Virus record (IMG/VR): IMGVR_UViG_3300017991_005548
Coordinates: 62,001 to 126,000 of that record
Strand: one strand, 5' to 3'
DNA length: 64,000 nucleotides
Shown piece by piece: positions 2,872-44,429 of the stretch; positions within the stretch are counted from its first letter, which is position 1, and each line of letters begins with the position of its first letter. The notes beneath the pieces were generated by a model. That model was not told where the DNA came from and searched no databases. It saw nothing but the letters and a program-made list of their open reading frames with translations. The position numbers and the translations under genes were made by a program.

Positions 2872-2935
2872 AAAAAACCCCGACCAGAAGTCGGGGCCAA
2901 AATACACGAAAAAAACCCCGACGAATGTCGAGGTT
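2872..2935 (-). terminator. two tandem intrinsic terminators of the Phe attenuator
   Basis: AACCTCGAC-ATTC-GTCGGGGTT+U run (2909-2935) and CCCCGAC-TTCTG-GTCGGGG+U6 (2872-2896). Confidence 0.85.
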
Positions 2936-2973
2936 AAAAAGATCTAAACAACACTTTGATCTAACTACCTCGA

Positions 2974-3018
2974 CTAGAGGTGGCTAAAAAATCGAAAGAT
3001 GTTGTTTAAGTTGTTCAT
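2974..3018 (-). CDS. Phe attenuator leader peptide MNNLNNIFRFFSHL
   Basis: 14 codons, three TTT codons, RBS AAGGA, between promoter and terminators upstream of two tRNA-Phe genes. Confidence 0.8.
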   Translation of the reverse strand: MNNLNNIFRFFSHL

Positions 3019-3043
3019 AATGTAAAATCCTTTTGTTGCCCCT

Positions 3044-3071
3044 ATTATAGGGTATCATCCATGCTTTTCAA
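3044..3071 (-). promoter_or_regulatory. sigma70-like promoter of the tRNA-Phe operon
   Basis: TTGAAA-N16-TATAAT. Confidence 0.8.
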
Positions 3072-3086
3072 GTCAGAACTGCAAAA

Positions 3087-3338
3087 TTAATCCAATTCAA
3101 GCATATCAATAAGATCAGCCTTACTTCTATATCCTGCAAACTTCAACTGAGGATCATCCACAAAAGACATAGGAACGGCCATAATGCCGAGTCTTTGAGC
3201 TTCTTTGAGGTTATCTGGATCTTCAGTCGGCTTAAGCTCTACTTTTACTTCTGGGTACTCTTCTACCAGTTTGTCAAGCTCTTTCTTGAGTCTCTTACAT
3301 GGGATACAGTGCTCTCCTGTAAAAACTGTTACTTTCAT
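3087..3338 (-). CDS. thioredoxin/glutaredoxin-like protein
   Basis: CIPC redox motif, cis-Pro motif AVP, 83 aa. Confidence 0.8.
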   Translation of the reverse strand: MKVTVFTGEHCIPCKRLKKELDKLVEEYPEVKVELKPTEDPDNLKEAQRLGIMAVPMSFVDDPQLKFAGYRSKADLIDMLELD

Positions 3339-3350
3339 TTTCTTTCTCCT

Positions 3351-4133
3351 TTAGGTTAAAAAATCTTTGTCAACGTAATGCACCATGAACTTACATACAG
3401 TATCGATAAGTTCATCAGGCATTCTTTTAAAACATTCGTTCACAAACTCATCTGGAACGTTTTTGTAATATGCATGAGCAATTGAGCCAGCCATAGCCGC
3501 AATGGTATCGCTGTCTCCACCCATCATTACTGCTTCTCTTATTGTACTCTCAAAATCCTCAGAATACAAGAAAGCGTATACAGCTTGCGGAACTGTCTCC
3601 TGGCAACTACAATTAAATCCTAGATGCTCAGAGGTCAAAATAAGGTCCGTTCTGTATCCAAACGACTCTACTGCTTCTCTAATTTCTTGCTTTGTCCCTC
3701 CATGCCAAGCTATGAATGTTGCCAAAGCAATTGCTTGAGCACCTTTAACTCCCTCTTCATGATTATGAGTCGCATCAGCACTCTTTTTGGCCTCTGCTAG
3801 AACATCCTTTTTAGATCTGCAATAGAAAGCAACAGGGCTAACTCTCATCGCAGACCCATTGCCATAACTATTATACCCTTCTTCTTGCTCACTTAAAGCC
3901 CACTCTTTGAAAGCACTACCATACCCTCTATCTTTGTAATTTCTATAGTATTCACGAATAGATTGTGAATAGTTTCCTGAATTCATCAAAACATCTGCTA
4001 CTGCGCAGGTTAGAACAGTATCGTCAGTAAAAATACACTTCTTGTTGAATAGAAGAAAATTTTTGGTTTTGGGGTGTCTTTTTGGGCCTTCCCAACGAGA
4101 GCCTATTATGTCTCCTAAAATCGCGCCTATCAC
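3351..4133 (-). CDS. ADP-ribosylglycohydrolase (DraG/ARH family)
   Basis: GAILGDIIGS, FTDDT, SYGNGSAMR, GGDSDTIAAMAG motifs; probable GTG start at 4133 coupled (GTGA) to upstream stop. Confidence 0.9.
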   Translation of the reverse strand: MIGAILGDIIGSRWEGPKRHPKTKNFLLFNKKCIFTDDTVLTCAVADVLMNSGNYSQSIREYYRNYKDRGYGSAFKEWALSEQEEGYNSYGNGSAMRVSPVAFYCRSKKDVLAEAKKSADATHNHEEGVKGAQAIALATFIAWHGGTKQEIREAVESFGYRTDLILTSEHLGFNCSCQETVPQAVYAFLYSEDFESTIREAVMMGGDSDTIAAMAGSIAHAYYKNVPDEFVNECFKRMPDELIDTVCKFMVHYVDKDFLT

Positions 4134-5149
4134 AATCTTTCTCCTTTTACTCTTTCCTTTTCGTACCCTAACCAAACTTTCCAACTTTTCCAGCCTCTAT
4201 CTTTATAAGTCCTATCTGGCACACTTGGTAAACAAACAGGTCTAGTATTTTCTTTCCAATATAAACACCATTCTGTTTTGCTTCTTATTCCCAATTTATG
4301 AACGAATTTTTCTGCTTCTTTATAAGGCATAAACCCACTTTTTGCAACTTTTATACTCCCCAAATCATAAAATTTGTTCTTTTTCCTTATTAAAAATAAA
4401 TTCGAAGGAGTGTTATACATATATTCTCTTAAAAGTATCGAACTGTTCTTAGCCACCCTAACTCTATAATACTTCTCTTTTAAACTTCTAACATTCCCCC
4501 TAAAACCATTTATATTTTCTTTTAATTTTAATAACAAACCATATGAGAACTTCTCACTTCCACTAGTAAGAGATGATTCTATGGAGTTCCTAGATATAGA
4601 TACATTACCGTCTCCGTCCCATAGCCCTCGTATAAAATCTGGCAGAAATTCTTCTGGAACATTAGGCATTTCACATGTCAGGCTTTTTCTCTCAGTTCCA
4701 CCTATTTTTTTAATTGATTCAACTAAATTTCTACAATAAATGTTCAAATGACAATATTTGCTTCTTGTCTCTTTAATGGGTCCATCAAAACCCATCGTTT
4801 TTGCGATTAACTCTAATAGATATTTATCTTTATTACTTTGCGTAATTGAAAACAAACTTTCATAAATACACCCATCTGCCCACCAAAAACCCAAAATATA
4901 CGCCATATCATGAGTCCATATCTCAAAGAAATCCTCATTTATCGAATATTTATCTCTTTTATAGGACATCTTTTTATACCCCATCCAATCCATGTACGAA
5001 ACCCATTCCGACTTATATACTTGATGAGGACTGCGAGGAATGAATGGAGGTCTGTTGTTTTTACACCAATCTTCCCATTCTGACTGCTTTTTAAGACCTA
5101 ATTGACGTACATATTGTCTTGCTTCTTCAAATAACAGGAATTTACTCAT
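4130..5149 (-). mobile_element. free-standing LAGLIDADG homing endonuclease with terminal integrase-repeat-like domains
   Basis: YILGFWWADG and FIRGLWDGDG motifs; N- and C-terminal F/YxEA(R/E)xxVxxLG...EW repeats. Confidence 0.85.
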
Positions 5150-5178
5150 TTCTTACTCTCCTTAAATGTTTTCGTCAT

Positions 5179-5247
5179 TTAATTCAAATAATTATGCACT
5201 TTATCCTGCGATTGACCCAACATTTTTCCGATGATTGCTCCGATCAT
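5179..5247 (-). pseudogene. relic 5' end of the ARH gene (MIGAIIG...)
   Basis: RBS AAGGA + ATG ATC GGA GCA ATC ATC GGA matches ARH N-terminus VIGAILG; ORF then diverges and stops after 22 codons. Confidence 0.6.
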
Positions 5248-5274
5248 AGTCTTTGTCCTTGTATTAAATCGATA

Positions 5275-5619
5275 TTACCAAGCGGCTTTTATTGTATGAT
5301 TTCCCTCGGCATCATATGTGATTTGTTGCCAATAACCAGATGAGTCTGTATGGAGAATAATCCTACCCAAAACATCGTATGACCAATACTGCCATGCTCC
5401 ATTATAGAAATCAATCCTTACGCATTGTTTCTTATCATTATATGATCTTCTGTGCCATTCCCCTTTGGAATTATTGTAGGCTATCCAAAGCCCTGCTTTA
5501 TCATACTCTTTGGTTTCCCAAACTCCATTATCATGGACATCTCGTATGATTTGCCCCCCATCTTTCGTTCTTGTTACAAATGAAGGCATGTTGTTACCTC
5601 TTTCGTAAAGGCGTTGCAC
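5275..5619 (-). CDS. hypothetical protein with short YD-like repeats
   Basis: Repeats EYDKAG / SYNDKK / SYDVLG / TYDAEG. Confidence 0.6.
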   Translation of the reverse strand: MQRLYERGNNMPSFVTRTKDGGQIIRDVHDNGVWETKEYDKAGLWIAYNNSKGEWHRRSYNDKKQCVRIDFYNGAWQYWSYDVLGRIILHTDSSGYWQQITYDAEGNHTIKAAW

Positions 5620-5651
5620 ATCATTATTCTAAAAGCCGAATAGGGAATCCT

Positions 5652-7331: not shown

Positions 7332-7409
7332 TGGTCGGGATAGCTGGATTCGAACCAGCGACTCCTTGACCCCCAGTCAAGTGCTCTAACCAGGCTGAGC
7401 TACATCCCG
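7332..7409 (-). tRNA. tRNA-Pro(GGG)
   Basis: Cloverleaf, loop CTGGGGG, CCA. Confidence 0.95.
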
Positions 7410-7451
7410 ACAATTATTCCGACACTTATCCCGACATTTTGTCGGGATTCA

Positions 7452-7574
7452 GAAAAACGCCAGTGTATTGCTCATTTATACTACCTCACAAAGTTTAGAA
7501 TGCTGAATAGAACCTTATTCAAGTTCACTTTTAATAGTACTGTATGGGTGGGATTCGAACCCACATCTCTGGCT
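7452..7574 (-). ncRNA. circularly permuted tRNA-like RNA 1
   Basis: 3' half (GCCAG, AGAT, T arm GTGGG-TTCGAAT-CCCAC, CCATACA; 7540-7574) precedes 5' half (TGTGAGG, D arm, CTGGC; 7452-7490); linker holds the CAGCA element. Confidence 0.7.
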
Positions 7575-7650
7575 TGGTATCCCCAACGGGAATTGAACCC
7601 GTATCTGTTGGTTGAGAACCAACTATCCTAGACCGTTAGACGATGGGGAC
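7575..7650 (-). tRNA. tRNA-Glu(CTC)
   Basis: Loop TTCTCAA, CCA. Confidence 0.95.
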
Positions 7651-7657
7651 ATTAAAA

Positions 7658-7785
7658 ATGAGTCGGAAGGAATCGAACCTTCATTCCCTGGTTGATTTAT
7701 TAAACATCAAATAGTTGCTGGAACGAAACTTATACAGTTTCACTTGGTTTTATGTCCAGGAGTTCTACCATTAAACTACGACCCA
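7658..7785 (-). ncRNA. tRNA-like gene with CAGCAA element inside the anticodon arm
   Basis: Acceptor TGGGTCG/CGACTCA, D and T arms intact, stem CCTGG/CCAGG enclosing ~60 nt; no CCA. Confidence 0.7.
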
Positions 7786-7805
7786 AGTTGTATCTCTAAT
7801 GAGAT

Positions 7806-7882
7806 TGGTCGGGTATGCAGGATTCGAACCTGCGATCTCATCATCCCAAATGATGCGCCTTACCAGACTAGGCTAATACCCG
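7806..7882 (-). tRNA. tRNA-Pro(TGG)
   Basis: Loop TTTGGGA, CCA. Confidence 0.95.
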
Positions 7883-8055
7883 ATACAGAAGTGTTTTATC
7901 CTGTTAAACTATCCCCAACAAGATCGTACTTTAAGTCATCTGACACTAACTCATTTCTGACCCCAGAATATATTTTATTGTTTTGAATGTCAGTTCGTAA
8001 CAACTACTTTACACTCTTAAGCCGAGGCTGGGACTCGAACCCAGATCTCTCCTTT
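7883..8055 (-). ncRNA. circularly permuted tRNA-like RNA 2
   Basis: 3' half (AGGAG, AGAT, CTGGG-TTCGAGT-CCCAG, CCTCGGC; 8020-8055) precedes 5' half (GTTGGGG, D arm, CTTCT; 7883-7919) with ~100-nt linker. Confidence 0.7.
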
Positions 8056-8146
8056 TGGTGACGCAGACGGGATTCGAACCCGCAAAGGAATCTCTTCCTA
8101 CCAGATTGAAAGTCTGGTTACTTCAGGCCAATTTGTATACTGCGCC
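8056..8146 (-). tRNA. tRNA-Glu(TTC) with long variable arm
   Basis: CCAGA-CTTTCAA-TCTGG; V arm AGGAA-GAGA-TTCCT; CCA. Confidence 0.85.
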
Positions 8147-8152
8147 ATTTTT

Positions 8153-8273
8153 TAGTCAGGACGGCTGGATTCGAACCAACTCCTTTAGCTCCTCAAGCTA
8201 AAATAAATATTGCTGTAGCGAACCTTATTGTCAAGTTCATGTTTATAACGTGCTACCATTACACTACGTCCTG
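8153..8273 (-). ncRNA. tRNA-like gene (C1-G72 body, GAG anticodon) with CAGCAA element between D and anticodon arms
   Basis: CAGGACG/CGTCCTG acceptor, 47-nt insert after D arm, TTAGC-TTGAGGA-GCTAA, ends A-CTA. Confidence 0.7.
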
Positions 8274-8318
8274 ATGGTCTGACCCTCAAAAATCATAAGT
8301 CTGATTCTCGAAAAGTCA

Positions 8319-8397
8319 TGGTCTGGATGGTAGGATTCGAACCTACGCTACTCCTCAGTCCAAGTGAGGCGGGATGACCAGACTTCCCCACATCCAG
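8319..8397 (-). tRNA. tRNA-Pro(TGG)
   Basis: CCTCA-CTTGGAC-TGAGG, CCA. Confidence 0.95.
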
Positions 8398-8427
8398 ATT
8401 AAGTCTTCTAAATTTTCAAAGATCATT

Positions 8428-8503
8428 TGGTGACCCCAGTGGGAATCGAACCCAACCTTCCCAGGATGAAAACCTGGTGTCCTAGCCGATAGACGATGGG
8501 GCC
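8428..8503 (-). tRNA. tRNA-Glu(TTC)
   Basis: CCAGG-TTTTCAT-CCTGG, CCA. Confidence 0.95.
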
Positions 8504-8512
8504 ATGGACAAT

Positions 8513-8578
8513 AAAAAAGCCCTCCTAACGCAAGCTAAGAGGGCACAAAAAAAGCCCTCCCGCTCATGGCAGAAGGGC
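8513..8578 (-). terminator. two tandem intrinsic terminators of the Glu/Pro attenuator
   Basis: GCCCT...AGGGC+U7 (8547-8578) and GCCCTC...GAGGGC+U6 (8513-8544). Confidence 0.8.
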
Positions 8579-8600: not shown

Positions 8601-8678
8601 CTACAGATCGGCTGACCTCCTGCCAAAGGCTGGCGGTTCTTCTCGTTCTGGTTCTCGAATGTACATGTAGTTGTTCAT
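8601..8678 (-). CDS. Glu/Pro attenuator leader peptide MNNYMYIREPEREEPPAFGRRSADL
   Basis: 25 codons with GAA x4 and CCA/CCG x3; RBS AAAGGA. Confidence 0.8.
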   Translation of the reverse strand: MNNYMYIREPEREEPPAFGRRSADL

Positions 8679-9076: not shown

Positions 9077-9594
9077 TACTTCTGAAAAACTCTTGCTCTT
9101 TTGGCATGAGATTGTCTAGCGGCAACCATTCGTGGATCATCATCAGCCAAACTCAATCCTTGTTCTGCTCCCAAAAGGAAAGAGTCAACGACTTCACGGG
9201 CCAATTTATGATTTTCTCCCCATTCTGGGTTTGTGGCAAATAGAAGGTCAATACCATTCAAAAGAGCCAAAGAGCCTGCTAAGGCCAAAGGGCGTTCGTT
9301 TGGCTTAATTTTACCCTCTGCAACGGCTTTATCGAGGTAATCCTCAACAACAGGGAAAAGAACCTGGGTATAGGTTGCTCCTTGAGAGGTATCAGCGGTT
9401 ACACCTTTGATAACTCCAATAACTTCTTTTACAACTGCCATTTCTTCTGGAGTTGGGTCGTCATAAGCAACCCAGGTTACTGAGGCACCTAAACCTGCGT
9501 TCAGAGCTACTACTTTTGCTTGGCTTGGTGTACAACCAGTTAATGGGATCATCAACATGGCTACGATTGCGGTGAAAAACATACTTCTTTTCAT
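9076..9594 (-). CDS. putative lipoprotein
   Basis: Signal peptide with lipobox LTGC. Confidence 0.65.
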   Translation of the reverse strand: MKRSMFFTAIVAMLMIPLTGCTPSQAKVVALNAGLGASVTWVAYDDPTPEEMAVVKEVIGVIKGVTADTSQGATYTQVLFPVVEDYLDKAVAEGKIKPNERPLALAGSLALLNGIDLLFATNPEWGENHKLAREVVDSFLLGAEQGLSLADDDPRMVAARQSHAKRARVFQK

Positions 9595-10112
9595 TTCAAG
9601 TTCTCCTTATTTTTGGTTAATTTTACTGAAATAAATCTTGGTTCATCTTTTCTACTAGTGACAGTCGCAAAATCAGAGCATTTTTCTACAATTTCGTCCA
9701 TTTTGCTCTTCGCAACATTAATATTTACTCTACGTCTGATCTTCATGGTGAAATGAAGTTCATGGCCATGATCAATAAACTCTTGAGCGTGTTTCATTTT
9801 ATGCTCAACATCATGATCGTCAATCGAAGGAGTAAAACGTATCTCCTTCATCTCATGTTTTTGATCTTTTTGTTGCTTCTTTTGTTTTTTACCTTTTTGA
9901 TATTTCCACTTACCGTAATCAATCAACTTACATAATGGGTTGTTCTTCTCGGTTTCCCCAGAGAAACAAACTAGGTCTAAACCTTTGTCCTGAGCTATCT
10001 CAATAGCATCAAGTGTTTTGATTTCTCTGTGAAATTTGTTATTTTCATCAACCAAATCAAGAATGACGAAGCTTTTGCTGTCAACGACCAAGAACGGTTC
10101 CATGGACTTCAA
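9591..10112 (-). CDS. infC: translation initiation factor IF-3
   Basis: AQDKGLDLV...CKLIDYGKWKYQ...KEIRFTPSIDDHD signature. Confidence 0.9.
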   Translation of the reverse strand: MKSMEPFLVVDSKSFVILDLVDENNKFHREIKTLDAIEIAQDKGLDLVCFSGETEKNNPLCKLIDYGKWKYQKGKKQKKQQKDQKHEMKEIRFTPSIDDHDVEHKMKHAQEFIDHGHELHFTMKIRRRVNINVAKSKMDEIVEKCSDFATVTSRKDEPRFISVKLTKNKENLK

Positions 10113-34505: not shown

Positions 34506-34534
34506 GTCGGTTTTGAATATTTTTTTTGAATTTT

Positions 34535-35407: not shown

Positions 35408-35409
35408 TC

Positions 35410-35997: not shown

Positions 35998-36011
35998 TAT
36001 TTTCCTCCACT

Positions 36012-36040
36012 AAAAAAGCCCCCGAATTTAATCAGGGGCT
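36012..36040 (-). terminator. intrinsic terminator
   Basis: AGCCCC...GGGGCT + U6. Confidence 0.6.
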
Positions 36041-36045
36041 TGAGT

Positions 36046-36537: not shown

Positions 36538-36554
36538 AATATGTCTCTCCTATT

Positions 36555-36872
36555 CTATGGTATGATGATCCCTCCTTTTCTTTTGTCGTTAGGAGTGACT
36601 ATCGTACTCTGTTGTTCTTTCAATTTTTCGATAGCTTCTTGTTGAGCCTCGTCTCTCAACCGATCATACTCTTCTTCAGCGAATTTCTGAAAATCTTCGA
36701 AGCACTGCTCAAGAGTATACCCTTCTGGGAATTCAAAGTTTTGTGGATCTCCCCCATATGGAGTTGGAATGATGAACATCCCGATGAACTGAGGTTCACC
36801 TTCTCCAACGGGGAATTTGCCAACTAACTGCTTCCCGTCGTCGTCCACGAATTGTTTAATTTCGTAGATCAT
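36555..36872 (-). CDS. hypothetical protein
   Basis: ORF track. Confidence 0.55.
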   Translation of the reverse strand: MIYEIKQFVDDDGKQLVGKFPVGEGEPQFIGMFIIPTPYGGDPQNFEFPEGYTLEQCFEDFQKFAEEEYDRLRDEAQQEAIEKLKEQQSTIVTPNDKRKGGIIIP

Positions 36873-37222
36873 ACCCCAATCCCCAGAGTCTCTTCAAGAT
36901 CCATGACAACGTCTCCACTGTCATTCCAGGAATTGACGACTTTGCTCTGGATGTTTCTCAGAGCAGGCAACGGAAGGTTCTCAATGTTGACCATATGAGG
37001 AACAACCATTACCTTAACCCCAGTTACTCCTTCGAAAAGTTCGTTTACCGTTTCGGCAACTCTTTCCATGTCGGACTTTGTTGCTGGAGTCTTTTCATTG
37101 CCAACCGTGACAATCAAAAGAGATCCGTCTTCGACATTTGGGAACACCTGGGTTTTGAGTGTTTCCAGATCTCGATCCATCTGTCCACTCGTTTCTTTTT
37201 TTACAGTCTCTTTCTTTGACAT
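36869..37222 (-). CDS. hypothetical protein
   Basis: ORF track, RBS AAGGAG. Confidence 0.55.
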   Translation of the reverse strand: MSKKETVKKETSGQMDRDLETLKTQVFPNVEDGSLLIVTVGNEKTPATKSDMERVAETVNELFEGVTGVKVMVVPHMVNIENLPLPALRNIQSKVVNSWNDSGDVVMDLEETLGIGV

Positions 37223-37263
37223 TGTCTTGCTCCTTAGTTAGACTTAAGAACGATGATATTTAT

Positions 37264-37291
37264 AGTATAGACCGAAAAAACAATAAATCAA
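37264..37291 (-). promoter_or_regulatory. sigma70-like promoter
   Basis: TTGATT-N16-TATACT. Confidence 0.55.
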
Positions 37292-37773
37292 GGGCGAGTA
37301 TGCAAAATAACTTGTTCGATCAACCTTTCTATGGAAGTTTCTGGCAACCTTCTCCTTTCCTTTTTATAAAGAAAATCAAGGTATCTCGTTTTTGGTGCAT
37401 TATCTGGACGACCATAAAAGAAGTTCTCAGATCCTACATGTAACCCAAATTCAACATTGGTTGTAAACGCTGGCATTGTTTTAAGTTCTCTAGGAACCCA
37501 CGCAAGTATGGCTCCAAATTCTCGACAATGCGCTAAAGCCCTATATTCCCAATAAACTTGTTTGTGATAGTCAAAGGTGTCATCACCCTCTTTTTCTCGT
37601 GGTTCAGGGACATAGAGAACTCCATCGAATTCATGCTGTTTAAAAATATCGATAGCATTTGGCCTCCATGACTGCACATCAATGCTTCTTGGAGATGGCC
37701 CGACTAAAAACACAGGTTTTGATATACCTCTGATATCCTCTTGAATTGGTTCTCTTGCATAAACTACTTTCAT
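37288..37773 (-). CDS. nucleoside 2-deoxyribosyltransferase-like protein
   Basis: VFLVGP..R...SWR; QV.WE; AWVPR...TTNVEFG. Confidence 0.75.
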   Translation of the reverse strand: MKVVYAREPIQEDIRGISKPVFLVGPSPRSIDVQSWRPNAIDIFKQHEFDGVLYVPEPREKEGDDTFDYHKQVYWEYRALAHCREFGAILAWVPRELKTMPAFTTNVEFGLHVGSENFFYGRPDNAPKTRYLDFLYKKERRRLPETSIERLIEQVILHTRP

Positions 37774-38093
37774 TGTATCTCTCCTTTATTCTTACACTCC
37801 ATGTTTTTAACAGTGAAGATTTCATATCTAATGCTAAGGATGATGTTAAACTGGCTACAAACGTCTATTAATTCTTCATCCATTGGAAAGTCAGGAATTT
37901 CTTCCCCTTCTGGCAATGCACTTATCCAATCTTCTGCTTTTTTGACCCATTCATTCGCCATATGTAAGTTTGTAAATGTTCCCACTTTCCAAGTAGTGAA
38001 GCTATTAGTACCAGAAACGGTGCCCTCAACAAGATAGACATTATTAACGTCTTCAAGATTATGGTGACTTAATAGAGTGGGTTTAATTTTCAT
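37770..38093 (-). CDS. hypothetical protein
   Basis: ORF track. Confidence 0.5.
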   Translation of the reverse strand: MKIKPTLLSHHNLEDVNNVYLVEGTVSGTNSFTTWKVGTFTNLHMANEWVKKAEDWISALPEGEEIPDFPMDEELIDVCSQFNIILSIRYEIFTVKNMECKNKGEIQ

Positions 38094-38121
38094 TGTAATA
38101 CTCTAAATTTTATTGCAAAAC

Positions 38122-38327
38122 TCCAAGCTCATAGGCAGGATTCTGTTTAATATTTTCCATCATTTATCTATTGGCATCAACCCGACCATTATAGAGTAGC
38201 TCACCCTCTAGGTCTGTTTGAATTGCAACCTCGGTAGTGCAAACGAATCTCTTCTCCTACCTTAAGCTAAGTTGTCCTGACCTTCCTCTCATGAGCATTA
38301 CCTCGTAGAGCGATGGATCGGCTTGAA
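38122..38327 (-). ncRNA. rnpB: minimal RNase P RNA
   Basis: CR-I GAGGAAGGTCAGGA (38275-88), CR-IV AGATAAAT (38162-69), CR-V ACAGAATCCTGCCTA (38132-46); P4 AGGTCAGGA/TCCTGCCT, P1 TCAAGC/GCTTGG, P2 TCCATCG/TGATGGA. Confidence 0.85.
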
Positions 38328-38333
38328 AATGTT

Positions 38334-38765
38334 TTATCCTGGCCAAGGCCAAGACATAGTTAAGTGTATTGAATACATAAATCCGCCACCATCCTTAACG
38401 GCGGAATATATAAAGGGGAAAGGCTTCTTTTTAATGTCTGCGATGGCTTCCTCAAGATAAGCGATAACCTCTTCCTCAGCCTTATTATCTCCAAGTTCTT
38501 TCCGCTTTTCGTGCCAACGAATCTGATCCCTATTTGGAACAATCCGAATAAACATGTCAGCAGGAATCCTGTCCTCATTACTACAGAACTCAGTCTTAAC
38601 CCCAATTTTCTTTTCGTTGGCTTTCTTAATAAAATCTAGGATTTCTGCTTCAGTCATCTCCATAACTTCAGACATCCCAAAATCTTCTTCTGGAATGCCA
38701 AGTGACTCTAGGATATGGACATCCTCTGCAATTGCGTGAAAAACGACTTTCATTGATGGCTCCAA
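38334..38765 (-). CDS. hypothetical protein
   Basis: ORF track. Confidence 0.55.
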   Translation of the reverse strand: MEPSMKVVFHAIAEDVHILESLGIPEEDFGMSEVMEMTEAEILDFIKKANEKKIGVKTEFCSNEDRIPADMFIRIVPNRDQIRWHEKRKELGDNKAEEEVIAYLEEAIADIKKKPFPFIYSAVKDGGGFMYSIHLTMSWPWPG

Positions 38766-39155
38766 TTATTTCTGTTTTCTACCAAGCAGTTTTTTAGTCT
38801 TCTTTTCCAAATCGTTGAGTTCAGAGAGCATTTTATCTCTTTCTTTACCTTTTTTGTTGGCTCTAACCTCACGTTTCATCCTACGGATTTCAGCAAGTGC
38901 TGATTTGAGTCTGTCTTCATTGGTTTTTTCTTCAGGCTCTTCGTCAAGAGCTTCGTCTATATCATCCAAAAATTTATCAATGATATGTTCAGTATCTCCT
39001 GCCTTGTTAGCCCACTGTATAACGAGTTCTGTTGCAGTGAAGTTGAATTCATCCATAATTCCATCTATGCCAAACTCGTTGTAAGTTTCTTCTATGTTTT
39101 GGGCAATTTTCGGAGAGCATTCGTTTTTGATCAAGAATTTATATAAGCTTTTCAT
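38766..39155 (-). CDS. hypothetical protein
   Basis: ORF track. Confidence 0.55.
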   Translation of the reverse strand: MKSLYKFLIKNECSPKIAQNIEETYNEFGIDGIMDEFNFTATELVIQWANKAGDTEHIIDKFLDDIDEALDEEPEEKTNEDRLKSALAEIRRMKREVRANKKGKERDKMLSELNDLEKKTKKLLGRKQK

Positions 39156-39607
39156 CTGTTTTGCTCAATGTATTTTTTCTTGTATCTCAGTGCTACTTCG
39201 CGAGTAGTAGGAATTATTTCCCTGTTCCCTTCATTCTTTAATTTCTTGTATCCTGTTCCCCATCCCTCTTCTGCGAGGCCACATTCTCTGCAAGATCTAA
39301 AAGGAGGTCTATGAGAATGATAATCACTGCTTTTCGCTTCAGCTTCTAAAACTAATTCATGAGGACATTTGTCCATATAAGCTTCTTCAGCTTTTATTCT
39401 GAGTTCAGTCAAGGATTTTAATCTGCGTCCCACTTGGTCAATTTTGTCTTGGACTTGTTGAATGAGAGCCTTTTCAACTGCACCATCACTGATTGCTTCT
39501 TGAACAGTCGATCCTAAGTCTGCAATACTTTGGATTTCTTCTGCTTCTTCGTCTTCGCACCACATTGGGTCAGGATCTGTATCAATCATTTCATTATTTA
39601 TGGACAT
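39152..39607 (-). CDS. hypothetical protein with Zn-finger-like motif
   Basis: CPH...CRECG. Confidence 0.55.
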   Translation of the reverse strand: MSINNEMIDTDPDPMWCEDEEAEEIQSIADLGSTVQEAISDGAVEKALIQQVQDKIDQVGRRLKSLTELRIKAEEAYMDKCPHELVLEAEAKSSDYHSHRPPFRSCRECGLAEEGWGTGYKKLKNEGNREIIPTTREVALRYKKKYIEQNR

Positions 39608-39637
39608 AGTCTACCTCATCGATTGTTGGTTAGACTT

Positions 39638-39729
39638 TGGCGGAAGGAGAGGGATTTGAACCCTCGTGCCCCTTTCAGGACCAACCGCTTTCCAGGCGGT
39701 GACGATTAACCAGACTCCGTCATCCTTCC
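39638..39729 (-). tRNA. tRNA-Ser(GGA)
   Basis: Loop CTGGAAA, long V arm, G73 CCA. Confidence 0.95.
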
Positions 39730-39735
39730 ATATTT

Positions 39736-39993
39736 TTATTTTTCATCTTGGGTTTTCGTTTCCCCTACTTTGATCAGATGTCTTGGGTTAACTAAAACAA
39801 GATAATTTTTAAGTACACAATATCCATTATCCAACATATACTCAATTTCATACATGGTGTTTATACTCATACTCCAAATACCTGCACCATGCCAGTCTTG
39901 ATATTTTTGGGGGCGTTTAACAACATCCCCAATTTTCAAGCCGTTAGGATTGCAAACATCTGCCAGTTCAAGATCCGTTCTTTTCATCTTCAA
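39736..39993 (-). CDS. hypothetical protein
   Basis: ORF track. Confidence 0.5.
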   Translation of the reverse strand: MKMKRTDLELADVCNPNGLKIGDVVKRPQKYQDWHGAGIWSMSINTMYEIEYMLDNGYCVLKNYLVLVNPRHLIKVGETKTQDEK

Positions 39994-40246
39994 GTTCCTT
40001 GTTGATGAAATTCTTTAACACTGCATTGAACCCAATAGAGACAAGTTCTGAAAGCTCGTCCTCTGTTAAATCATGGGTTCTGACCCCCTCAATATTTTCT
40101 GATGCTTTTACAGCAACAACAGGAAGTCCACTCTCTTTTATTAAATCTTTTAGTGCAATAAGTATTAACGTATCGATCTCTCCTTCAGTAAGATCGATCT
40201 TAAATGGTTCGCCTGCTTCAAGTTTTTCTGGTTCAAGAATTTTCAT
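39968..40246 (-). CDS. hypothetical protein
   Basis: ORF track. Confidence 0.5.
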   Translation of the reverse strand: MKILEPEKLEAGEPFKIDLTEGEIDTLILIALKDLIKESGLPVVAVKASENIEGVRTHDLTEDELSELVSIGFNAVLKNFINKELEDEKNGS

Positions 40247-40473
40247 CGTTTAATTACCTTCTCAGGCATTTCATCTCTTTTGTTCACAACCATGTACTTC
40301 CCATTGCCCTCAAAAATAACAGAAAGACCGCCATTTATTAGCTTAGCTGTTTCGCATTTGATCATTTCTGCCCCATCTTTTCTTTTGATCATCTCCCCAA
40401 CATACTCTTCCTGTACTTTTTGATTGATAAAATCTGTTAGATTCATATATCTACCTTTTATTTGGCTCTTCAA
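40243..40473 (-). CDS. hypothetical protein
   Basis: ORF track. Confidence 0.45.
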   Translation of the reverse strand: MKSQIKGRYMNLTDFINQKVQEEYVGEMIKRKDGAEMIKCETAKLINGGLSVIFEGNGKYMVVNKRDEMPEKVIKR

Positions 40474-40678
40474 TCACCATTATACAGCCAAGATTAGTAT
40501 CAAAGTAACTAAGTCCATATTCTTCCAGAACTTCTAGGACCAGTTCCCTCATTTTAAGGGAATTTCCTGTAACAACCTCAAAAGGAGGGTCATAATTAAA
40601 AATATGAGAGTCAAGTAAAGACCGAACATCTTGATGCTTAACCCCATGTAAATCTAACTTCATTTTCCGTGTAACCAA
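40451..40678 (-). CDS. Smr-domain-like small protein
   Basis: LDLHG...VVTGNS motif. Confidence 0.6.
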   Translation of the reverse strand: MVTRKMKLDLHGVKHQDVRSLLDSHIFNYDPPFEVVTGNSLKMRELVLEVLEEYGLSYFDTNLGCIMVIEEPNKR

Positions 40679-41325
40679 CCCTTCCGATTATGAGTCTCTT
40701 TCATTTGAACCTCTTCGGAAGGGACATAAAGACAGTGGTCCTGGATATATCGTTGAACTTCTTCGTCCAAATATGGCAAAAAGTCTGATCTGCCATGTTT
40801 TTTGAAGTGATCTCTTGCCATAGTAGACGAACATTCGGTAATTTTGTCTTCTACGTCCAAGAAAAGATGGGGAGGATTCTTATACCATCGATATTTCTTC
40901 TTCAATTCGATTCCACTTCTTGTTACAACAACAAATTTGGCAATTTCCCGTAATTTTTTGAAATTATGCCAGTTAATGAAGTTGTTTACGTTGTCAGCAC
41001 CAATGATAAAACTGATATCAACATCAAGTTGTGGGTCTTTGAGGAGGGTTTGGACTAATTCGAAGGTCGAACCACTCAGTTCATGTCTAATTTCGTAATC
41101 AAATACATGAAGTTTCGGATTTTTTCTGCAAGCGATAGCGCACATCCTGAGTCTGTGTAAATTAAGCTCTAAATTCTTACCAAATCGATGTTTATTGCAA
41201 GGCAAGAGCCAAACTTCATCAAATTTTCCTTTTTCAAGGACAAATTCAGCTACTTGTATATGAGCAAGTGTTGGGGGATTGAAAGCCCCGCCAAGAATGG
41301 CAATTTTAGTCATAGTTTTCTCCAA
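40660..41325 (-). CDS. nadD: nicotinate/nicotinamide mononucleotide adenylyltransferase
   Basis: GGAFNPPTLAH, FIIGADN...W, CSSTMAR. Confidence 0.9.
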   Translation of the reverse strand: MEKTMTKIAILGGAFNPPTLAHIQVAEFVLEKGKFDEVWLLPCNKHRFGKNLELNLHRLRMCAIACRKNPKLHVFDYEIRHELSGSTFELVQTLLKDPQLDVDISFIIGADNVNNFINWHNFKKLREIAKFVVVTRSGIELKKKYRWYKNPPHLFLDVEDKITECSSTMARDHFKKHGRSDFLPYLDEEVQRYIQDHCLYVPSEEVQMKETHNRKGWLHGK

Positions 41326-41331
41326 TGATTT

Positions 41332-41419
41332 TGGCGGAAGAGGTGGGATTCGAACCCACGGATGCTCTCACATCAACGGTTTTCAAGACCGCCGCCTTCG
41401 ACCTCTCAGCCACTCTTCC
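41332..41419 (-). tRNA. tRNA-Ser(TGA)
   Basis: Loop CTTGAAA, long V arm, CCA. Confidence 0.95.
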
Positions 41420-41428
41420 AAATTTTGA

Positions 41429-41562
41429 TGGACAAGACGGGATTCGAACCCGCAAATCGAGATGCCTCACCCATTGCTTAGGAGAAAAATAACTCCTGCC
41501 CATGGTAGCGACATTACTCTTAAGACCAGAGCCTCAACTTTGCCAATTTAAGTTACTTGCCC
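41429..41562 (-). ncRNA. tRNA-like RNA with branched ~75-nt insert replacing the anticodon loop
   Basis: GGGCAAG/CTTGTCC acceptor, D arm, T arm GCGGG-TTCGAAT-CCCGT; two inserted hairpins; no CCA. Confidence 0.65.
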
Positions 41563-41576
41563 GTCTTGTCAAATTT

Positions 41577-41698
41577 TGGCGGATGAGGTAGGATTCGAAC
41601 CTACACTGTAGCGGTTTCTGTTTTTTGGTTGCTGAAGAGAACCTTTTTGTCAAGTTCATTTTTTGGACCGCCGTCTCTGCCAGTTGGACTACTCATCC
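41577..41698 (-). ncRNA. tRNA-like gene with CAGCAA element in the anticodon loop
   Basis: GGATGAG/CTCATCC-GCCA; stem GCGGT/ACCGC encloses 51 nt. Confidence 0.75.
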
Positions 41699-41709
41699 AT
41701 ATTTATAGT

Positions 41710-41737
41710 AATATAGCCTTAAAATAAGAGATTGCAA
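41710..41737 (-). promoter_or_regulatory. internal promoter
   Basis: TTGCAA-N16-TATATT. Confidence 0.55.
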
Positions 41738-41756
41738 GTTAAATATAAAGAAAAAT

Positions 41757-41843
41757 TGGAGGAAGATTGAGGGTTCGAACCCCATCCCTTTCGGAACCAT
41801 CTGTTTTCGAAACAGTGACAGGAGCCATCCTGCATAATCTTCC
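41757..41843 (-). tRNA. tRNA-Ser(CGA)
   Basis: Loop TTCGAAA, long V arm, CCA (U73). Confidence 0.85.
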
Positions 41844-41851
41844 ATAGAAAT

Positions 41852-41941
41852 TGGCGGAAGGGGAGGGATTCGAACCCTCGGACCCCTTGCGGGGTCGCAG
41901 GTTTAGCAAACCTGTACTTTCGGCCACTCAGTCACCCTTCC
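41852..41941 (-). tRNA. tRNA-Ser(GCT)
   Basis: Loop TTGCTAA, long V arm, CCA. Confidence 0.95.
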
Positions 41942-41951
41942 ATAGGGGGCA

Positions 41952-42689
41952 TTATACCCCAAAAATCAATAATTCAAAATCGCCATTCTCATGTTCTACG
42001 ATTGCAGAGCAATGCTCTACCCAATCTCCGCAGTTATAGTAGTCAATCCCATCAATTTTTTTGATTATAGGAGAATGAACATGACCACATATAACTCCAT
42101 CGCAATGATTCTCTTTGGCATACTCTGAAAGGAGACCTTCAAACTCTCCAACATAAGTAACAGCTTTTTTAAAATTTTCCCTGGCAAACTTTGATAAACG
42201 AACTCTTTTCACTCCGAACATCCTTAAACATCTTGCCAGGAACTCATTCATTGAAACAAGAGTGTCATAACCCCAACTTCCAACCTTTGAGATCATGACT
42301 CCAATTCTTGAAAAAAGAATGAAATCAAACTTATCTCCATGAGTGATGTAATACTTCTTTCCAAAACTGTGATAATATGTTTCTTTACAAATTTCCAGGT
42401 TCGGATAATGAAAACTGTCCAAAAGTTCCATCATACCATGATCATGATTTCCTAAAACATAATGGACGTTACAGTGTTTTGACATTTTTAGAAGTCTTCT
42501 AATGACTTCTGTTTGGTTTTTATCCCATTTAGTTCTGTCTAATCTCCAAAGATCAAAGATATCTCCGATAAGATATAAATTGTCACATTCAGTCTCTTTT
42601 AGGAATTTAAGTAGTTCTTTAGATTTGCATCCAACACTGGCCATGTGGCAGTCTGAGATGAATACTGCTCGGTACTTAGTTTTACTCAT
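41952..42689 (-). CDS. LpxH-like calcineurin-type metallophosphoesterase
   Basis: FISDCH, GDIFD, GNHD, THGD, GHVH, NCGDW; likely start MSKTK at 42689. Confidence 0.85.
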   Translation of the reverse strand: MSKTKYRAVFISDCHMASVGCKSKELLKFLKETECDNLYLIGDIFDLWRLDRTKWDKNQTEVIRRLLKMSKHCNVHYVLGNHDHGMMELLDSFHYPNLEICKETYYHSFGKKYYITHGDKFDFILFSRIGVMISKVGSWGYDTLVSMNEFLARCLRMFGVKRVRLSKFARENFKKAVTYVGEFEGLLSEYAKENHCDGVICGHVHSPIIKKIDGIDYYNCGDWVEHCSAIVEHENGDFELLIFGV

Positions 42690-42777
42690 ATTTTTCCTCC
42701 TATAAGTAGTAAGGAATAATACTGAGAAAACAGGATAAAACCTACTCAATAATGAGTTGTTAACCAAGTATTAATAT

Positions 42778-42868
42778 TGGCAGAGGGAGTGGGACTCGAA
42801 CCCACAAACCGCATTTCTACAGCTTACATGATTTCAAATCAAGCTCTTCATCCAGCCAGATTCCCTCC
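42778..42868 (-). tRNA. tRNA-Ser(TGA), divergent
   Basis: CTTGA-TTTGAAA-TCATG, long V arm, G73 CCA. Confidence 0.75.
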
Positions 42869-42874
42869 ATTGAT

Positions 42875-42960
42875 TGGTAGCTAGGAGGGGGGTCGAACCC
42901 CTACGCCTTTCGGCATTAGTTTCTAAGACTAACATGTCTACCAAGTTCCATCACCTAGCC
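42875..42960 (-). tRNA. tRNA-Leu(TAG)
   Basis: Loop CTTAGAA, long V arm, CCA. Confidence 0.95.
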
Positions 42961-42965
42961 ATCTT

Positions 42966-43042
42966 TGGTAGCCTCGCTGGGAGTCGAACCCAGAACATAC
43001 AGTTTCTAAGACTGCCCTCTCTGCCAATTGGAGTACGAGACC
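42966..43042 (-). tRNA. tRNA-Leu(TAG), short variable arm
   Basis: Loop CTTAGAA, 5-nt V region, CCA. Confidence 0.85.
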
Positions 43043-43050
43043 ATTAAATT

Positions 43051-43136
43051 TGGCGGAAGGTAGGAGATTCGAACTCCTATGCCCGTGAGGACGACAGTTT
43101 AGCAAACTGCTGGCTTACCATTCGCCACAACCTTCC
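43051..43136 (-). tRNA. tRNA-Ser(GCT)
   Basis: Loop TTGCTAA, CCA. Confidence 0.9.
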
Positions 43137-43138
43137 AT

Positions 43139-43225
43139 TGGTAGCCAGGGAGGGCCTCGAACCCTTACTCCCTTTCGGGAACTGGATTTTGAATCCAGCG
43201 CGTCTGCCAATTTCACCACCTGGCC
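43139..43225 (-). tRNA. tRNA-Leu(CAA)
   Basis: Loop TTCAAAA, long V arm, CCA. Confidence 0.95.
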
Positions 43226-43236
43226 AATAAATTTAA

Positions 43237-43304
43237 TGGAGCTAATGAGATTCGAACTCATCCCCCTGCCTCTATGGGCAGTTCGGCTACCGTCTAGTAA
43301 CCCC
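43237..43304 (-). ncRNA. degenerate tRNA-like RNA with G3:U70 acceptor
   Basis: GGGGTTA/TAGCTCC-A, T arm ATGAG-TTCGAAT-CTCAT, 6-nt loop CATAGA, poor D arm. Confidence 0.5.
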
Positions 43305-43336
43305 AATTGGTTGCGTATAAACATATAAACAATATT

Positions 43337-43424
43337 TGGTAGTCTCGGGGAGATTCGAACTCCCACCTCCTTCGCGGAGACAACGACCTCAACGTTGCGT
43401 GTCTGCCAGTTCCACCACGAGACC
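43337..43424 (-). tRNA. tRNA-Leu(GAG)
   Basis: Loop TTGAGGT, long V arm, CCA. Confidence 0.95.
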
Positions 43425-43494
43425 ATTATAAGTGGCCATAACTGACGAATTAACCCCAGTTTTGGCCGTTTATTCGTAATATATTACGAATTAT

Positions 43495-43570
43495 TGGTAG
43501 CCCTGGTCGGATTCGAACCGACACTTTACGGATTTTAAGTCCGCTCCCTCTGCCGTTGGAGTACAGGGCC
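43495..43570 (-). tRNA. tRNA-Leu(TAA), short variable arm
   Basis: Loop CTTAAAA, CCA. Confidence 0.85.
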
Positions 43571-43645
43571 ATTTTTAACTGTTTTTCTCGTTATAGTGGA
43601 AAATATAACTGTTTTTCCAGTTTTGTAACTGTTTTTCCAGTAAAA

Positions 43646-43737
43646 TGGTGAGCAGGGAGGGATTCGAACCCCCAATGTTTACCCAAAGGGGACAGATTTA
43701 CAGTCTGCCGCAACACCACCATCGTTGCCGCCTACCC
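43646..43737 (-). tRNA. tRNA-Tyr(GTA)
   Basis: Loop CTGTAAA, long V arm, CCA. Confidence 0.9.
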
Positions 43738-43741
43738 ATTT

Positions 43742-43829
43742 TGGTCCTGGTGGTAGGTAACGATCCTACTTGATGCGCAATGATGATAGTTTTACAGACT
43801 ACCCCGTCTCCTTAACGGTCTACACCAGG
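43742..43829 (-). tRNA. tRNA-Tyr(GTA), atypical T loop
   Basis: Loop CTGTAAA; T loop ATCGTTA; CCA. Confidence 0.75.
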
Positions 43830-43940
43830 ATAAAAAGGTGACTTAAGTCACCTAATGCCTCTGGGTCAGACTTACCAATACCGTCATATTGGGTCCGATA
43901 GCCCAGTAAGGACTTTAAGCGTCTGGTTTTCCCCAGACCC

Positions 43941-44028
43941 TGGAGCGCGGTGAGGGATTCGAACCCTCGCGGACATAAGTCCCATCAGTTTTGCAGACTG
44001 TGCCATTAAACCACTCTGGCAACCGCGC
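43941..44028 (-). tRNA. tRNA-Cys(GCA) with long variable arm
   Basis: Loop CTGCAAA; V arm GGAC-TTAT-GTCC; U73 CCA. Confidence 0.85.
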
Positions 44029-44034
44029 ATATTA

Positions 44035-44105
44035 AGCACGATGTCGGAATCGAACCGACTTCTGCGGGTTTGCAATCCGCCGCCTCACCATCTGGCTCAT
44101 CGTGC
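44035..44105 (-). tRNA. tRNA-Cys(GCA), no encoded CCA
   Basis: Loop TTGCAAA, U73. Confidence 0.9.
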
Positions 44106-44141
44106 ATGGCAATAAAATTTCAAAGATCTCTTGATGTTTTA

Positions 44142-44213
44142 AATATTCCCGTTCGGTAACATTCGAAACACTCTGAAGTTCAAAACCTTAGAATATTACC
44201 GCTCGGTAACATT
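44142..44213. repeat. pair of 22-bp palindromes 50 bp apart
   Basis: AATATT(C/A)CCG(TT/CT)CGGTAACATT at ~44142-44163 and ~44192-44213. Confidence 0.65.
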
Positions 44214-44233
44214 TTGGCTATCAATTAAGCCAT

Positions 44234-44266
44234 AAAAAAACCCCGTTCGGAAAACCGAACGGGGTT
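44234..44266 (-). terminator. attenuator terminator of the Cys/Tyr/Leu/Ser tRNA operon
   Basis: AACCCCGTTCGG-TTTT-CCGAACGGGGTT + U run. Confidence 0.9.
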
Positions 44267-44284
44267 GAAAACCGAGTTAAGAAC

Positions 44285-44362
44285 TTACGTTCTCTGGACG
44301 CACAACCCCGTCCATCTCAAACTGAGATATGATGAACATAGGCTGAGCGATAAAGATTTCAT
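44285..44362 (-). CDS. Ser/Leu/Cys/Tyr attenuator leader peptide MKSLSLSLCSSYLSLRWTGLCVQRT
   Basis: 25 codons; residues 3-15 are only S,L,C,Y; RBS AGGA. Confidence 0.8.
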   Translation of the reverse strand: MKSLSLSLCSSYLSLRWTGLCVQRT

Positions 44363-44401
44363 TATAAGTTCTTTCCTGTTAAAAATTCAAATTACAACCC
44401 T

Positions 44402-44429
44402 ATTATAAACTGGATCTGAAGCTTTTCAA
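44402..44429 (-). promoter_or_regulatory. promoter of the Cys/Tyr/Leu/Ser tRNA operon
   Basis: TTGAAA-N16-TATAAT. Confidence 0.8.

Follow-up and report, generated by a model that had tools for sequence, protein, structure and literature searches.

Leader-peptide attenuation is a textbook mechanism for the control of amino-acid biosynthesis operons and of a few synthetase operons; we know of no case in which it governs transfer RNA (tRNA) genes, nor of any in a phage. Multivalent attenuators control the ilvGMEDA (Ile/Leu/Val) and thr (Thr/Ile) operons, where shortage of any one of the amino acids relieves termination. Here, we analysed a window of 64,000 nucleotides (nt) from IMG/VR virus record IMGVR_UViG_3300017991_005548 (positions 62,001 to 126,000), in which four modules, M1, M2, M3 and M4, each place a short leader open reading frame (ORF) and one or two intrinsic terminators in front of a group of tRNA genes. 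We consider it likely, with a probability of about 0.8, that each of these four tRNA transcription units is gated by a ribosome-mediated (leader-peptide) transcription attenuator of the classical kind. The mechanism itself is classical; new are the tRNA genes as its product, the phage setting, and the multi-amino-acid leaders that are matched to their operons.

The phage leaders resemble those of ilvGMEDA and thr in that a single leader carries codons for several amino acids. In the bacterial cases, however, the operons encode biosynthetic enzymes and the list of amino acids mirrors a shared pathway, whereas the phage operons carry tRNAs and the list, with seven amino acids in M3 and four in M4, mirrors the tRNA content of the operon. 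T-box elements, which bind uncharged tRNA directly and without translation, likewise switch between terminator and antiterminator according to the state of a specific tRNA, and control tRNA charging or supply. The phage elements differ from them in their predicted need for a ribosome and a short ORF. Neither the T-box nor the Phe_leader, His_leader, Thr_leader, Leu_leader and Trp_leader models of Rfam matched the window at E<=1.

The Phe module, M1, closely resembles the pheM attenuator of E. coli pheST-ihfA. Both leaders have 14 codons with the core IFRFF, which in M1 lies within MNNLNNIFRFFSHL, both place the antiterminator strand right behind the stop codon and an intrinsic terminator after it, and both showed the same three-state behaviour under one folding protocol. 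Moreover, pheM senses charged tRNA-Phe and controls a component of tRNA-Phe charging or supply, as M1 is predicted to do. In contrast to pheM, M1 gates tRNA genes rather than a synthetase, has tandem terminators, and is a phage-encoded element that appears to have been multiplied into differently coded copies. The preliminary description of this DNA knew of no precedent for attenuated tRNA operons or phage tRNAs. The full-text literature, whose coverage leaves out most subscription journals, likewise yielded no report of leader-peptide attenuation of tRNA operons, phage or bacterial; the form of the Phe module, however, has a close precedent in pheM.

Phage T5 shares with the window phage large tRNA arrays interspersed with small ORFs and tRNA-like stable RNAs. 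Within its tRNA region (28,000-41,000 of the record) we found no annotated promoter followed by an annotated terminator before the tRNAs, and several annotated promoters directly precede tRNA genes. T5 was also tried as a control for codon-match scoring and set aside as uninformative, its downstream tRNA sets covering half the code. In E. coli, the promoters of the tRNA-Phe genes pheU and pheV immediately precede the tRNA, and neither a leader ORF nor a terminator intervenes.

Anatomy, codon content and pairing of the modules

We assign the window to an uncultured huge phage with a genome of ~524 kilobases (kb), because IMG/VR contigs of 296 and 476 kb, as well as a metagenome contig of 524,692 base pairs (bp), match it at 99-100% identity. 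ARAGORN identified 34 tRNA genes in the window, every one on the - strand, in four groups, and Rfam added at least four tRNA-like genes with inserts. The four groups include no tRNAs for Gly, Ala, Thr, Lys, Asn or Gln. The 8.7 kb past the left window edge contained no more tRNAs. Attenuation had been claimed for all four phage tRNA operons; this count stands for the window, and the remainder of the ~524-kb genome lies outside its scope.

Each of the four modules, all on the - strand, runs from a promoter through a Shine-Dalgarno sequence and a leader ORF of 14-26 codons (14, 25, 26 and 25 in M1, M2, M3 and M4, respectively) to one or two intrinsic terminators and then to tRNA genes. The layout proposed in the preliminary description was thus recovered from the sequence in every part. 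An AGGA-type Shine-Dalgarno sequence lies 9-12 nt upstream of the ATG in M1-M4 and in most orthologues. The promoter sequence TTGAAA-N16-TATAAT, previously reported for the four modules and present in all of them, occurs six times in the 64 kb against 0.06 expected, each time on the - strand, and four of the six sites sit at the head of M1-M4. The terminators, two each in M1 and M2 and one each in M3 and M4, are among the strongest in the region. In M1-M3, the gap of 8-16 nt between the terminator stem and the first tRNA leaves no room for another promoter, and the 130-nt spacer between terminator and tRNA in M4 held no promoter-like site. Hence, with no promoter between terminator and first tRNA, tRNA expression from the module promoters requires read-through.

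The M1 promoter (3071-3044) is followed by the Shine-Dalgarno sequence AAGGA ~10 nt before the ATG and by the 14-codon leader ORF (3018-2974; MNNLNNIFRFFSHL), with Phe at codons 8, 10 and 11. The antiterminator strand GTCGAGGT (2967-2974), whose first letters belong to the stop codon, can pair with the 5' arm of terminator 1 at 2927-2934, and region 1 (CACCTC, 2977-2982) is able to sequester this strand. Tandem intrinsic terminators at 2935-2914 and 2898-2876 precede two tRNA-Phe(GAA) genes (2713-2868, from 2868), identified by ARAGORN. In M2, the promoter (8731-8704) leads to a leader ORF of 25 codons (8678-8601; MNNYMYIREPEREEPPAFGRRSADL) with the core EPEREEPP, the Glu/Pro run spanning codons 9-16. 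Its antiterminator strand, GGCAGGAGG in codons 19-21 (8616-8624), pairs with CCTTCTGCC at 8568-8576, and the tandem terminators lie at 8579-8553 and 8544-8519. The M2 operon (7332-8503) carries Glu(UUC) twice, Glu(CUC), Pro(UGG) twice and Pro(GGG) according to ARAGORN, together with two of the insert-bearing tRNA-like genes found by Rfam (8273-8156 and 7785-7658).

The M3 promoter (29841-29814) precedes a leader ORF of 26 codons (29716-29636; MNVVRDMHIIRRDWSHRASDLRYRMF) with its regulatory run in codons 3-17. A bipartite antiterminator strand of 16 nt in codons 14-19 (29661-29676) pairs with the terminator 5' arm at 29605-29618. The terminator (29618-29589) has a 13-bp stem, and the first tRNA begins 13 nt past this stem. 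The M3 operon (27452-29576) comprises tRNAs for Arg (CCU, UCU, ACG, UCG), Trp, Ile (two), Val (GAC), Asp (two) and Met, a helix-turn-helix ORF, and tRNA-His. Between its first and second tRNAs lies a conserved ORF of 51 amino acids (...MYELVWVGRNYSKKQLIEDLKKAKEKLK; ~29498-29343), which also occurs at 9669-9824 of L131, a 66% relative (L-numbers denote fetched contigs of relatives).

In M4, the promoter (44429-44402) is followed by a leader ORF of 25 codons (44362-44285; MKSLSLSLCSSYLSLRWTGLCVQRT) with the regulatory run in codons 3-15 and region 1 within these codons (44345-44331). The antiterminator strand GGACGGGGTTG in codons 17-20 (44313-44303) pairs with the terminator 5' arm at 44267-44257, and the terminator (44266-44239) has a 12-bp stem. 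The M4 operon (39638-44105) encodes two tRNA-Cys, two tRNA-Tyr, five tRNA-Leu (UAA, GAG, CAA and UAG twice) and five tRNA-Ser (GCU twice, CGA, UGA, GGA); an LpxH-like ORF, a cytidylyltransferase-like ORF and two tRNA-like genes with inserts are located between the tRNAs. The M4 spacer also contains two near-identical 22-nt repeats at 44213-44192 and 44163-44142, AATGTTACCGAGCGGTAATATT and AATGTTACCGAACGGGAATATT, each forming a small hairpin, which may be a processing or binding site.

Codons were scored as readable by the operon tRNAs according to standard wobble rules. When the leaders were cross-matched with the operons, the own operon scored highest in all four cases. The tRNAs of the M3 operon read 16 of the 61 sense codons, and in a run of 14 consecutive codons of its leader (VVRDMHIIRRDW.HR) they read 13. 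In M4 the own operon can read 13 of 13 consecutive codons (SLSLSLCSSYLSL), and all ten distinct anticodons of the operon are touched. Glu or Pro occupies seven of eight consecutive codons in M2, and Phe three of four in M1. The window contains 1309 ORFs of 8-45 codons that begin with ATG. When these were ranked against each operon, the operon's own leader came first for M2 and M3, and for M4 it came first in anticodon coverage and second in run score. The codon/tRNA correspondence is solid at the amino-acid level, as the preliminary description had stated; at the isoacceptor level it is only suggestive. The idea that the leaders sample every isoacceptor found no statistical support, being nominal for M4 only, not significant in M3 and absent in M2.

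The preliminary description had further noticed a leader segment complementary to the terminator 5' arm. We found one in each of M1-M4, in the distal part of the ORF or just 3' of it, and its duplex energy was reached by only 1, 3, 1 and 0 of 2000 dinucleotide shuffles in M1, M2, M3 and M4, respectively. This pairing occupies the terminator 5' arm and the terminator hairpin excludes it; all four modules thereby show the sequence features expected of a ribosome-stalling attenuator. We then folded transcripts cut just before the terminator 3' arm, using a 28-nt ribosome mask. In each of the four modules the antiterminator folded whichever regulatory codon occupied the A site, and moving the ribosome to the stop codon abolished it in M1 and M2. 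Without a ribosome, M1 and M4 formed a 1:2 hairpin that sequesters the antiterminator strand, i.e., the classical superattenuated state. The same protocol gave all three states for the E. coli pheM-pheST leader, which served as positive control and whose duplex energy was reached by 4 of 1000 shuffles. Furthermore, the 3' arm of terminator 1 in M1 and M2 reads as complementary to the 5' arm of terminator 2, and here a single antiterminator could disable both terminators.

Conservation and covariation in relatives

Relatives were located via an OGFr_N-like gene just upstream of M3, whose homologues graded from 77 to 35% identity, and relatives at 66-75% protein identity retain leaders. M3 orthologues were obtained from seven distinct phages (L122/L197, L129, L131, L132, L135, L138 and L181), all with a TTGAAA promoter, a Shine-Dalgarno sequence and a terminator abutting tRNA-Arg(CCU). 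Their leaders start with MKNVMDMHIRRWDRSHR... in L132, MNLVIDMHIRRWDRSHR... in L135, MSKIIDMHIRRWDRSYR... in L129, MKNVMDMHIRRWDRSFG... in L122/L197, MKKVRDMHIIRRWDRS... in L131, MKKVRNMHIIRRWDRS... in L138 and MTNQNMHIIRRWDDRD... in L181.

Across this alignment the M3 terminator was 95% paired, with compensatory change at four pairs. None of 500 shuffles reached its covariation score or percentage paired, and 3 of 500 reached its count of compensatory pairs. Pairing of the antiterminator reached 84%, with two compensatory pairs, and did not exceed 55% in a slid register; its alignment shuffle control was only modest (30-41 of 500). In all M3 orthologues its strand is placed 54-60 nt from the ATG. 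Significant duplexes were obtained for L132, L122, L131 and L135; L129 was borderline, and L181 fell short of significance. In L122, loss of 1 nt changes the reading frame past the regulatory run, such that the nucleotides are conserved and the peptide tail is changed. We read this sequence as a signature of constraint at the RNA level downstream and at the codon level upstream.

The preliminary description had proposed to look for the same layout upstream of tRNA clusters in related phages, with sensing codons that co-vary with tRNA content. The layout was conserved there, with compensatory changes; the co-variation of codons and tRNAs was partial and concerned Val. The window has GTT GTT with tRNA-Val(GAC), L132 has GTA with tRNA-Val(UAC) (detected by Rfam only, anticodon read by hand), L131 has GTA with tRNA-Val(AAC), and in L129 both the Val codon and the Val tRNA are absent. 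Val codons thus appear to co-vary, in part, with the presence and anticodon of Val tRNA. The numbers of Arg and Ile codons (four and two in the window, three and one in L122) also parallel the numbers of tRNA-Arg and tRNA-Ile genes. This parallel counts for little in our view: with one tRNA-Ile each, L129 and L131 have three and two Ile codons, respectively.

M2 has an orthologue in a 68% relative (L123/L197), with the leader MNNNITIEQPEQEPPAFGW..., two terminators and then Glu and Pro tRNAs. By reading of the sequence, its antiterminator pairing is kept: GGUUGGAGG pairs with CCUUUAGCC, the window counterpart being GGCAGGAGG with CCUUCUGCC, and one A-U pair is exchanged for U-A. The M1 orthologue in L197 has the leader MINLNNSFFRFFSFLRLARW, two terminators and an unusual tRNA-Phe(GAA). 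Hence, the orthologues of M1 and M2 in L197 comprise a Phe-rich and a Glu/Pro-rich leader with tandem terminators each, although their complementarity is weaker than in the window. For L123/L197 we also considered whether the Gln codons of the M2 leader follow the presence of a Gln tRNA. This idea was dropped, since the gene in question is tRNA-like, has an insert of 61 nt and an uncertain anticodon, and is matched by a homologue in the window.

Searches beyond these relatives gave little. The IMG/VR search with the window matched only the same phage, at 99-100% identity, and the 50,697 deposited phage records contained no near DNA match when queried with the M3 region (27000-31000). An IMG/VR scan for the promoter pattern was swamped by chance matches. 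Among OGFr_N homologues at <=56% identity with enough flank, tRNA synteny was lost, and species-representative bacterial and archaeal genomes yielded distant Planctomycete homologues only. The unrelated tRNA-rich contigs L175, L188 and L191 showed no leader with terminator, and a candidate leader in L185 was discarded since it falls within a coding region. The LpxH-like gene was tried as a handle for M4 and abandoned: its homologues were mostly bacterial LpxH, and the two contexts retrieved lacked tRNA synteny.

Proposed mechanism and alternatives

In the mechanism that we propose, leader translation, its kinetic coupling to transcription and the physiological trigger are what we infer. A host sigma-70-type RNA polymerase would start at the strong TTGAAA-N16-TATAAT promoter, and a ribosome would load onto the short leader ORF. 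If all regulatory codons are decoded promptly, the ribosome would trail the polymerase and cover or clear the antiterminator strand, the hairpin or hairpins of the terminator would form, and transcription would end a few bases before the first tRNA. If the aminoacyl-tRNA for any regulatory codon is scarce, the ribosome would stall upstream, leaving the antiterminator strand to pair with the terminator 5' arm and the polymerase to read into the tRNA genes. In M1 and M2, the stall would also free the 3' arm of terminator 1 to trap the 5' arm of terminator 2.

Such a circuit would act as a negative-feedback controller of tRNA supply, since its output consists of the very tRNAs by which the sensing codons are decoded. 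The groups so controlled would be Phe in M1, Glu/Pro in M2, Arg/Val/Asp/Met/His/Ile/Trp in M3 and Ser/Leu/Cys/Tyr in M4. Candidate triggers are the depletion of host tRNAs, either by the phage itself or by anticodon nucleases of the host, and codon demand late in infection. Destruction of tRNAs by nucleases may plausibly be the signal. A polynucleotide kinase gene beside the window (L120) and RNA ligase or RtcB genes in relatives make tRNA damage a plausible pressure.

Several observations weigh against attenuation of this kind. Taken alone, M1 is statistically weak, as its leader has three Phe codons and ranks in the top ~8% of the 1309 short ORFs. Given the peptide and phage codon usage, the coverage of synonymous codons had P = 0.04 in M4, 0.36 in M3 and 1.0 in M2. 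The leader of M2 omits the Glu CUC and Pro GGG isoacceptors, and the leaders contain codons unmatched by their own operon, namely CGA in M1 and M2 and AGC in M3. Complementarity was not significant in L197 M1 (189/1000), L197 M2 (85/1000) and L181 (126/1000). The L122 leader has GTA, yet no Val tRNA was found there. For M4 no orthologue was obtained, and a search with its leader pattern gave chance matches without tRNAs. In the folding analysis, ribosome-free M2 and M3 folded the antiterminator, so that these modules show no superattenuation, and M3 and M4 retained the antiterminator with the ribosome on the stop codon. To us the latter structure seems sterically and kinetically implausible, because the helix must close round a 70S ribosome with ~12 free nt.

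The CGA (Arg) codon lies inside the Phe run of M1, where E. coli pheM has CGC, and occurs twice inside the Glu/Pro run of M2. In the L197 M2 leader (10798), CAG and CAA (Gln) stand at the positions of the CGA codons of M2 in the window. The CGA codons may be a relic of pheM ancestry or deliberately slow codons.

The same attenuators might instead serve as a generic governor, which couples phage tRNA synthesis to the overall speed of translation or to amino-acid supply and in which the multi-amino-acid composition of the leaders gives maximal sensitivity to any slowdown. Shortage of any aminoacyl-tRNA, including that caused by amino-acid starvation, would indeed stall the ribosome, and the two isoacceptors of four that M2 ignores, the non-significant sampling at the codon level and the CGA codons unserved by their own operons all fit this explanation. 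We nevertheless judge it improbable, as a generic governor has no need for four distinct operon-matched leaders, the amino acids enriched in each leader are those of its own operon only, and Val codons in relatives track the presence and anticodon of Val tRNA.

Still less probable is that the terminators are temporal gates opened by a processive antitermination factor, similar to lambda N or Q or RNA-based, with the short ORFs being incidental or serving for ribosome loading. Strong promoter-proximal tandem terminators are typical of factor-dependent timing in phages, and a fifth promoter of this type in the window (34505-34478) has a 480-nt noncoding leader and a terminator-like hairpin with no conserved short ORF. 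However, such a factor leaves unexplained the operon-specific codon content, the reading frame that is conserved only through the regulatory run, the conserved place of the terminator-complementary strand within the ORF and the likeness to pheM. Chance occurrence of short ORFs and hairpins in AT-rich intergenic DNA upstream of tRNA genes can practically be dismissed: M1 by itself would not stand out, but four independent modules have significant codon match and complementarity and are conserved in relatives with compensatory change.

Origin, neighbouring genes and significance

For M1 at least, a likely source can be named. At 16394-17018, L197 carries the Phe leader, in which the core is kept as FFRFF, two terminators, an atypical tRNA-Phe(GAA) missed by ARAGORN, and an ORF of 90 amino acids. 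This ORF is the N-terminal domain of PheRS-alpha (PF02912, E 8e-11) and aligns with residues 1-75 of E. coli PheS at 24% identity. In the window itself, tblastn detected no pheS remnant or PheS-like ORF. The resemblance of M1 to pheM and the PheS N-domain ORF of L197 together suggest capture of a host pheST attenuator, and M1 probably descends from such a host-type (pheM) element. The simplest reading of these sequences would be that an ancestor captured the 5' region of a host pheM-pheS locus, that tRNA-Phe came under its control, and that the module was then duplicated and recoded.

The earlier suggestion of a duplicated module, based on ATGAACAAC and GTAGTTAGATCA shared by leaders 1 and 2, is supported by the alignment. 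M1 and M2 align from the promoter through the start codon and again at GTAGTTAGATCA, and share the promoter, the 5' untranslated region, ATGAACAAC and an ATY...CGA stretch. These similarities support M2 as a duplicated and recoded copy of M1; perhaps M3 and M4 were also derived from M1 by duplication and recoding.

The tRNA genes are often present as pairs with the same anticodon (Phe, Asp, Ile, Tyr, Cys, Leu-UAG, Glu-UUC and Pro-UGG), including those at 2713-2868, 28398-28552, 28752-28925, 43646-43829, 43941-44105 and 42875-43042. The two members of each pair have strongly divergent sequences, one being canonical and the other having an unusual D-arm, extra arm or odd length (91-nt Glu, Ile). 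The tRNA-like genes at 8273-8156, 7785-7658, 41698-41580 and 41562-41429 (all on the - strand) and at 11259-11377 of L197 scored 35-47 bits with the Rfam tRNA model and were missed by ARAGORN. An insert of 45-60 nt replaces their anticodon arm. At least three of the window genes, and also the one from L197, have in common a GAACTTGACAAWAAGGTTC-type hairpin with CAGCAA after it. Intron-bearing tRNAs are one candidate identity, tRNA mimics resembling Y RNA (YrlA-type) another.

An element at 38116-38329 (-) matched the bacterial class A RNase P RNA with 48.9 bits and an E of 5e-14, below the gathering score of 100 but far from random. The conserved motifs GAGGAAGGUC, AGAUAAAUG and ACAGAAUCC are present, most of the specificity domain is missing, and the element lies just downstream of a terminator-like hairpin (38405-38382), itself 3' of the M4 tRNA operon. 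It may represent a minimal phage-encoded RNase P RNA. The noncoding leader of the fifth promoter (34505-33998, -) is ~480 nt long, ends in a 20-bp terminator-like hairpin and precedes the gene of a DUF2828/DUF7788 protein (33997-32564). L122, L127 and L131 have a conserved counterpart of this RNA, in which the motifs CAGCAA and CTGTTC recur, and in L131 an RtcB gene adjoins it. This locus is reminiscent of bacterial Ro/Y-RNA/RtcB loci.

Other phage genes on the - strand encode IF3 (9591-10112), HSP20 (26865-27194), an LpxH-like UDP-2,3-diacylglucosamine diphosphatase (41952-42767), a cytidylyltransferase-like protein (40660-41325) and an ADP-ribosylglycohydrolase (3351-4184); the LpxH-like and cytidylyltransferase-like genes are those already listed for the M4 operon. 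Close to the window but not within it, L120 carries a polynucleotide kinase/phosphatase-like gene (19183-20471). The proteins of the window also include a ClpB-like ATPase, helicases and a methyltransferase. The DnaB-type helicase had its best match in Bacillus phage G at 25% identity, and the nearest homologues of the LpxH-like enzyme were from Campylobacterota at ~43% identity. The LpxH-like enzyme, among other proteins encoded in the window, points to a Gram-negative host.

Only tentatively, and with some doubt, we put forward a wider picture: an autonomous, operon-by-operon tRNA homeostat, whose leaders act as codon "barcodes" and which arose from a captured pheM-pheS attenuator by duplication and recoding, maybe within a wider tRNA maintenance island. 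Such an island may comprise the RNase P RNA, the insert-bearing tRNA-like RNAs, the Ro-like protein with its conserved noncoding RNA, IF3, and the polynucleotide kinase and RNA ligase/RtcB of the flank and of relatives, and would let the phage replace exactly those tRNAs that are destroyed by host or phage.

If the modules are indeed attenuators, phage tRNA genes would be regulated by demand rather than expressed constitutively, which bears on the question of why phages carry tRNAs, i.e., for codon supply or for defence against tRNA-cleaving immunity. The leaders would be compact amino-acid- and tRNA-specific sensors for seven plus four amino acids, which could be used as reporters of charged tRNA. 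Furthermore, they would offer a clear case of a regulatory element of a host synthetase operon that was captured by a phage and reprogrammed by recoding a dozen codons.

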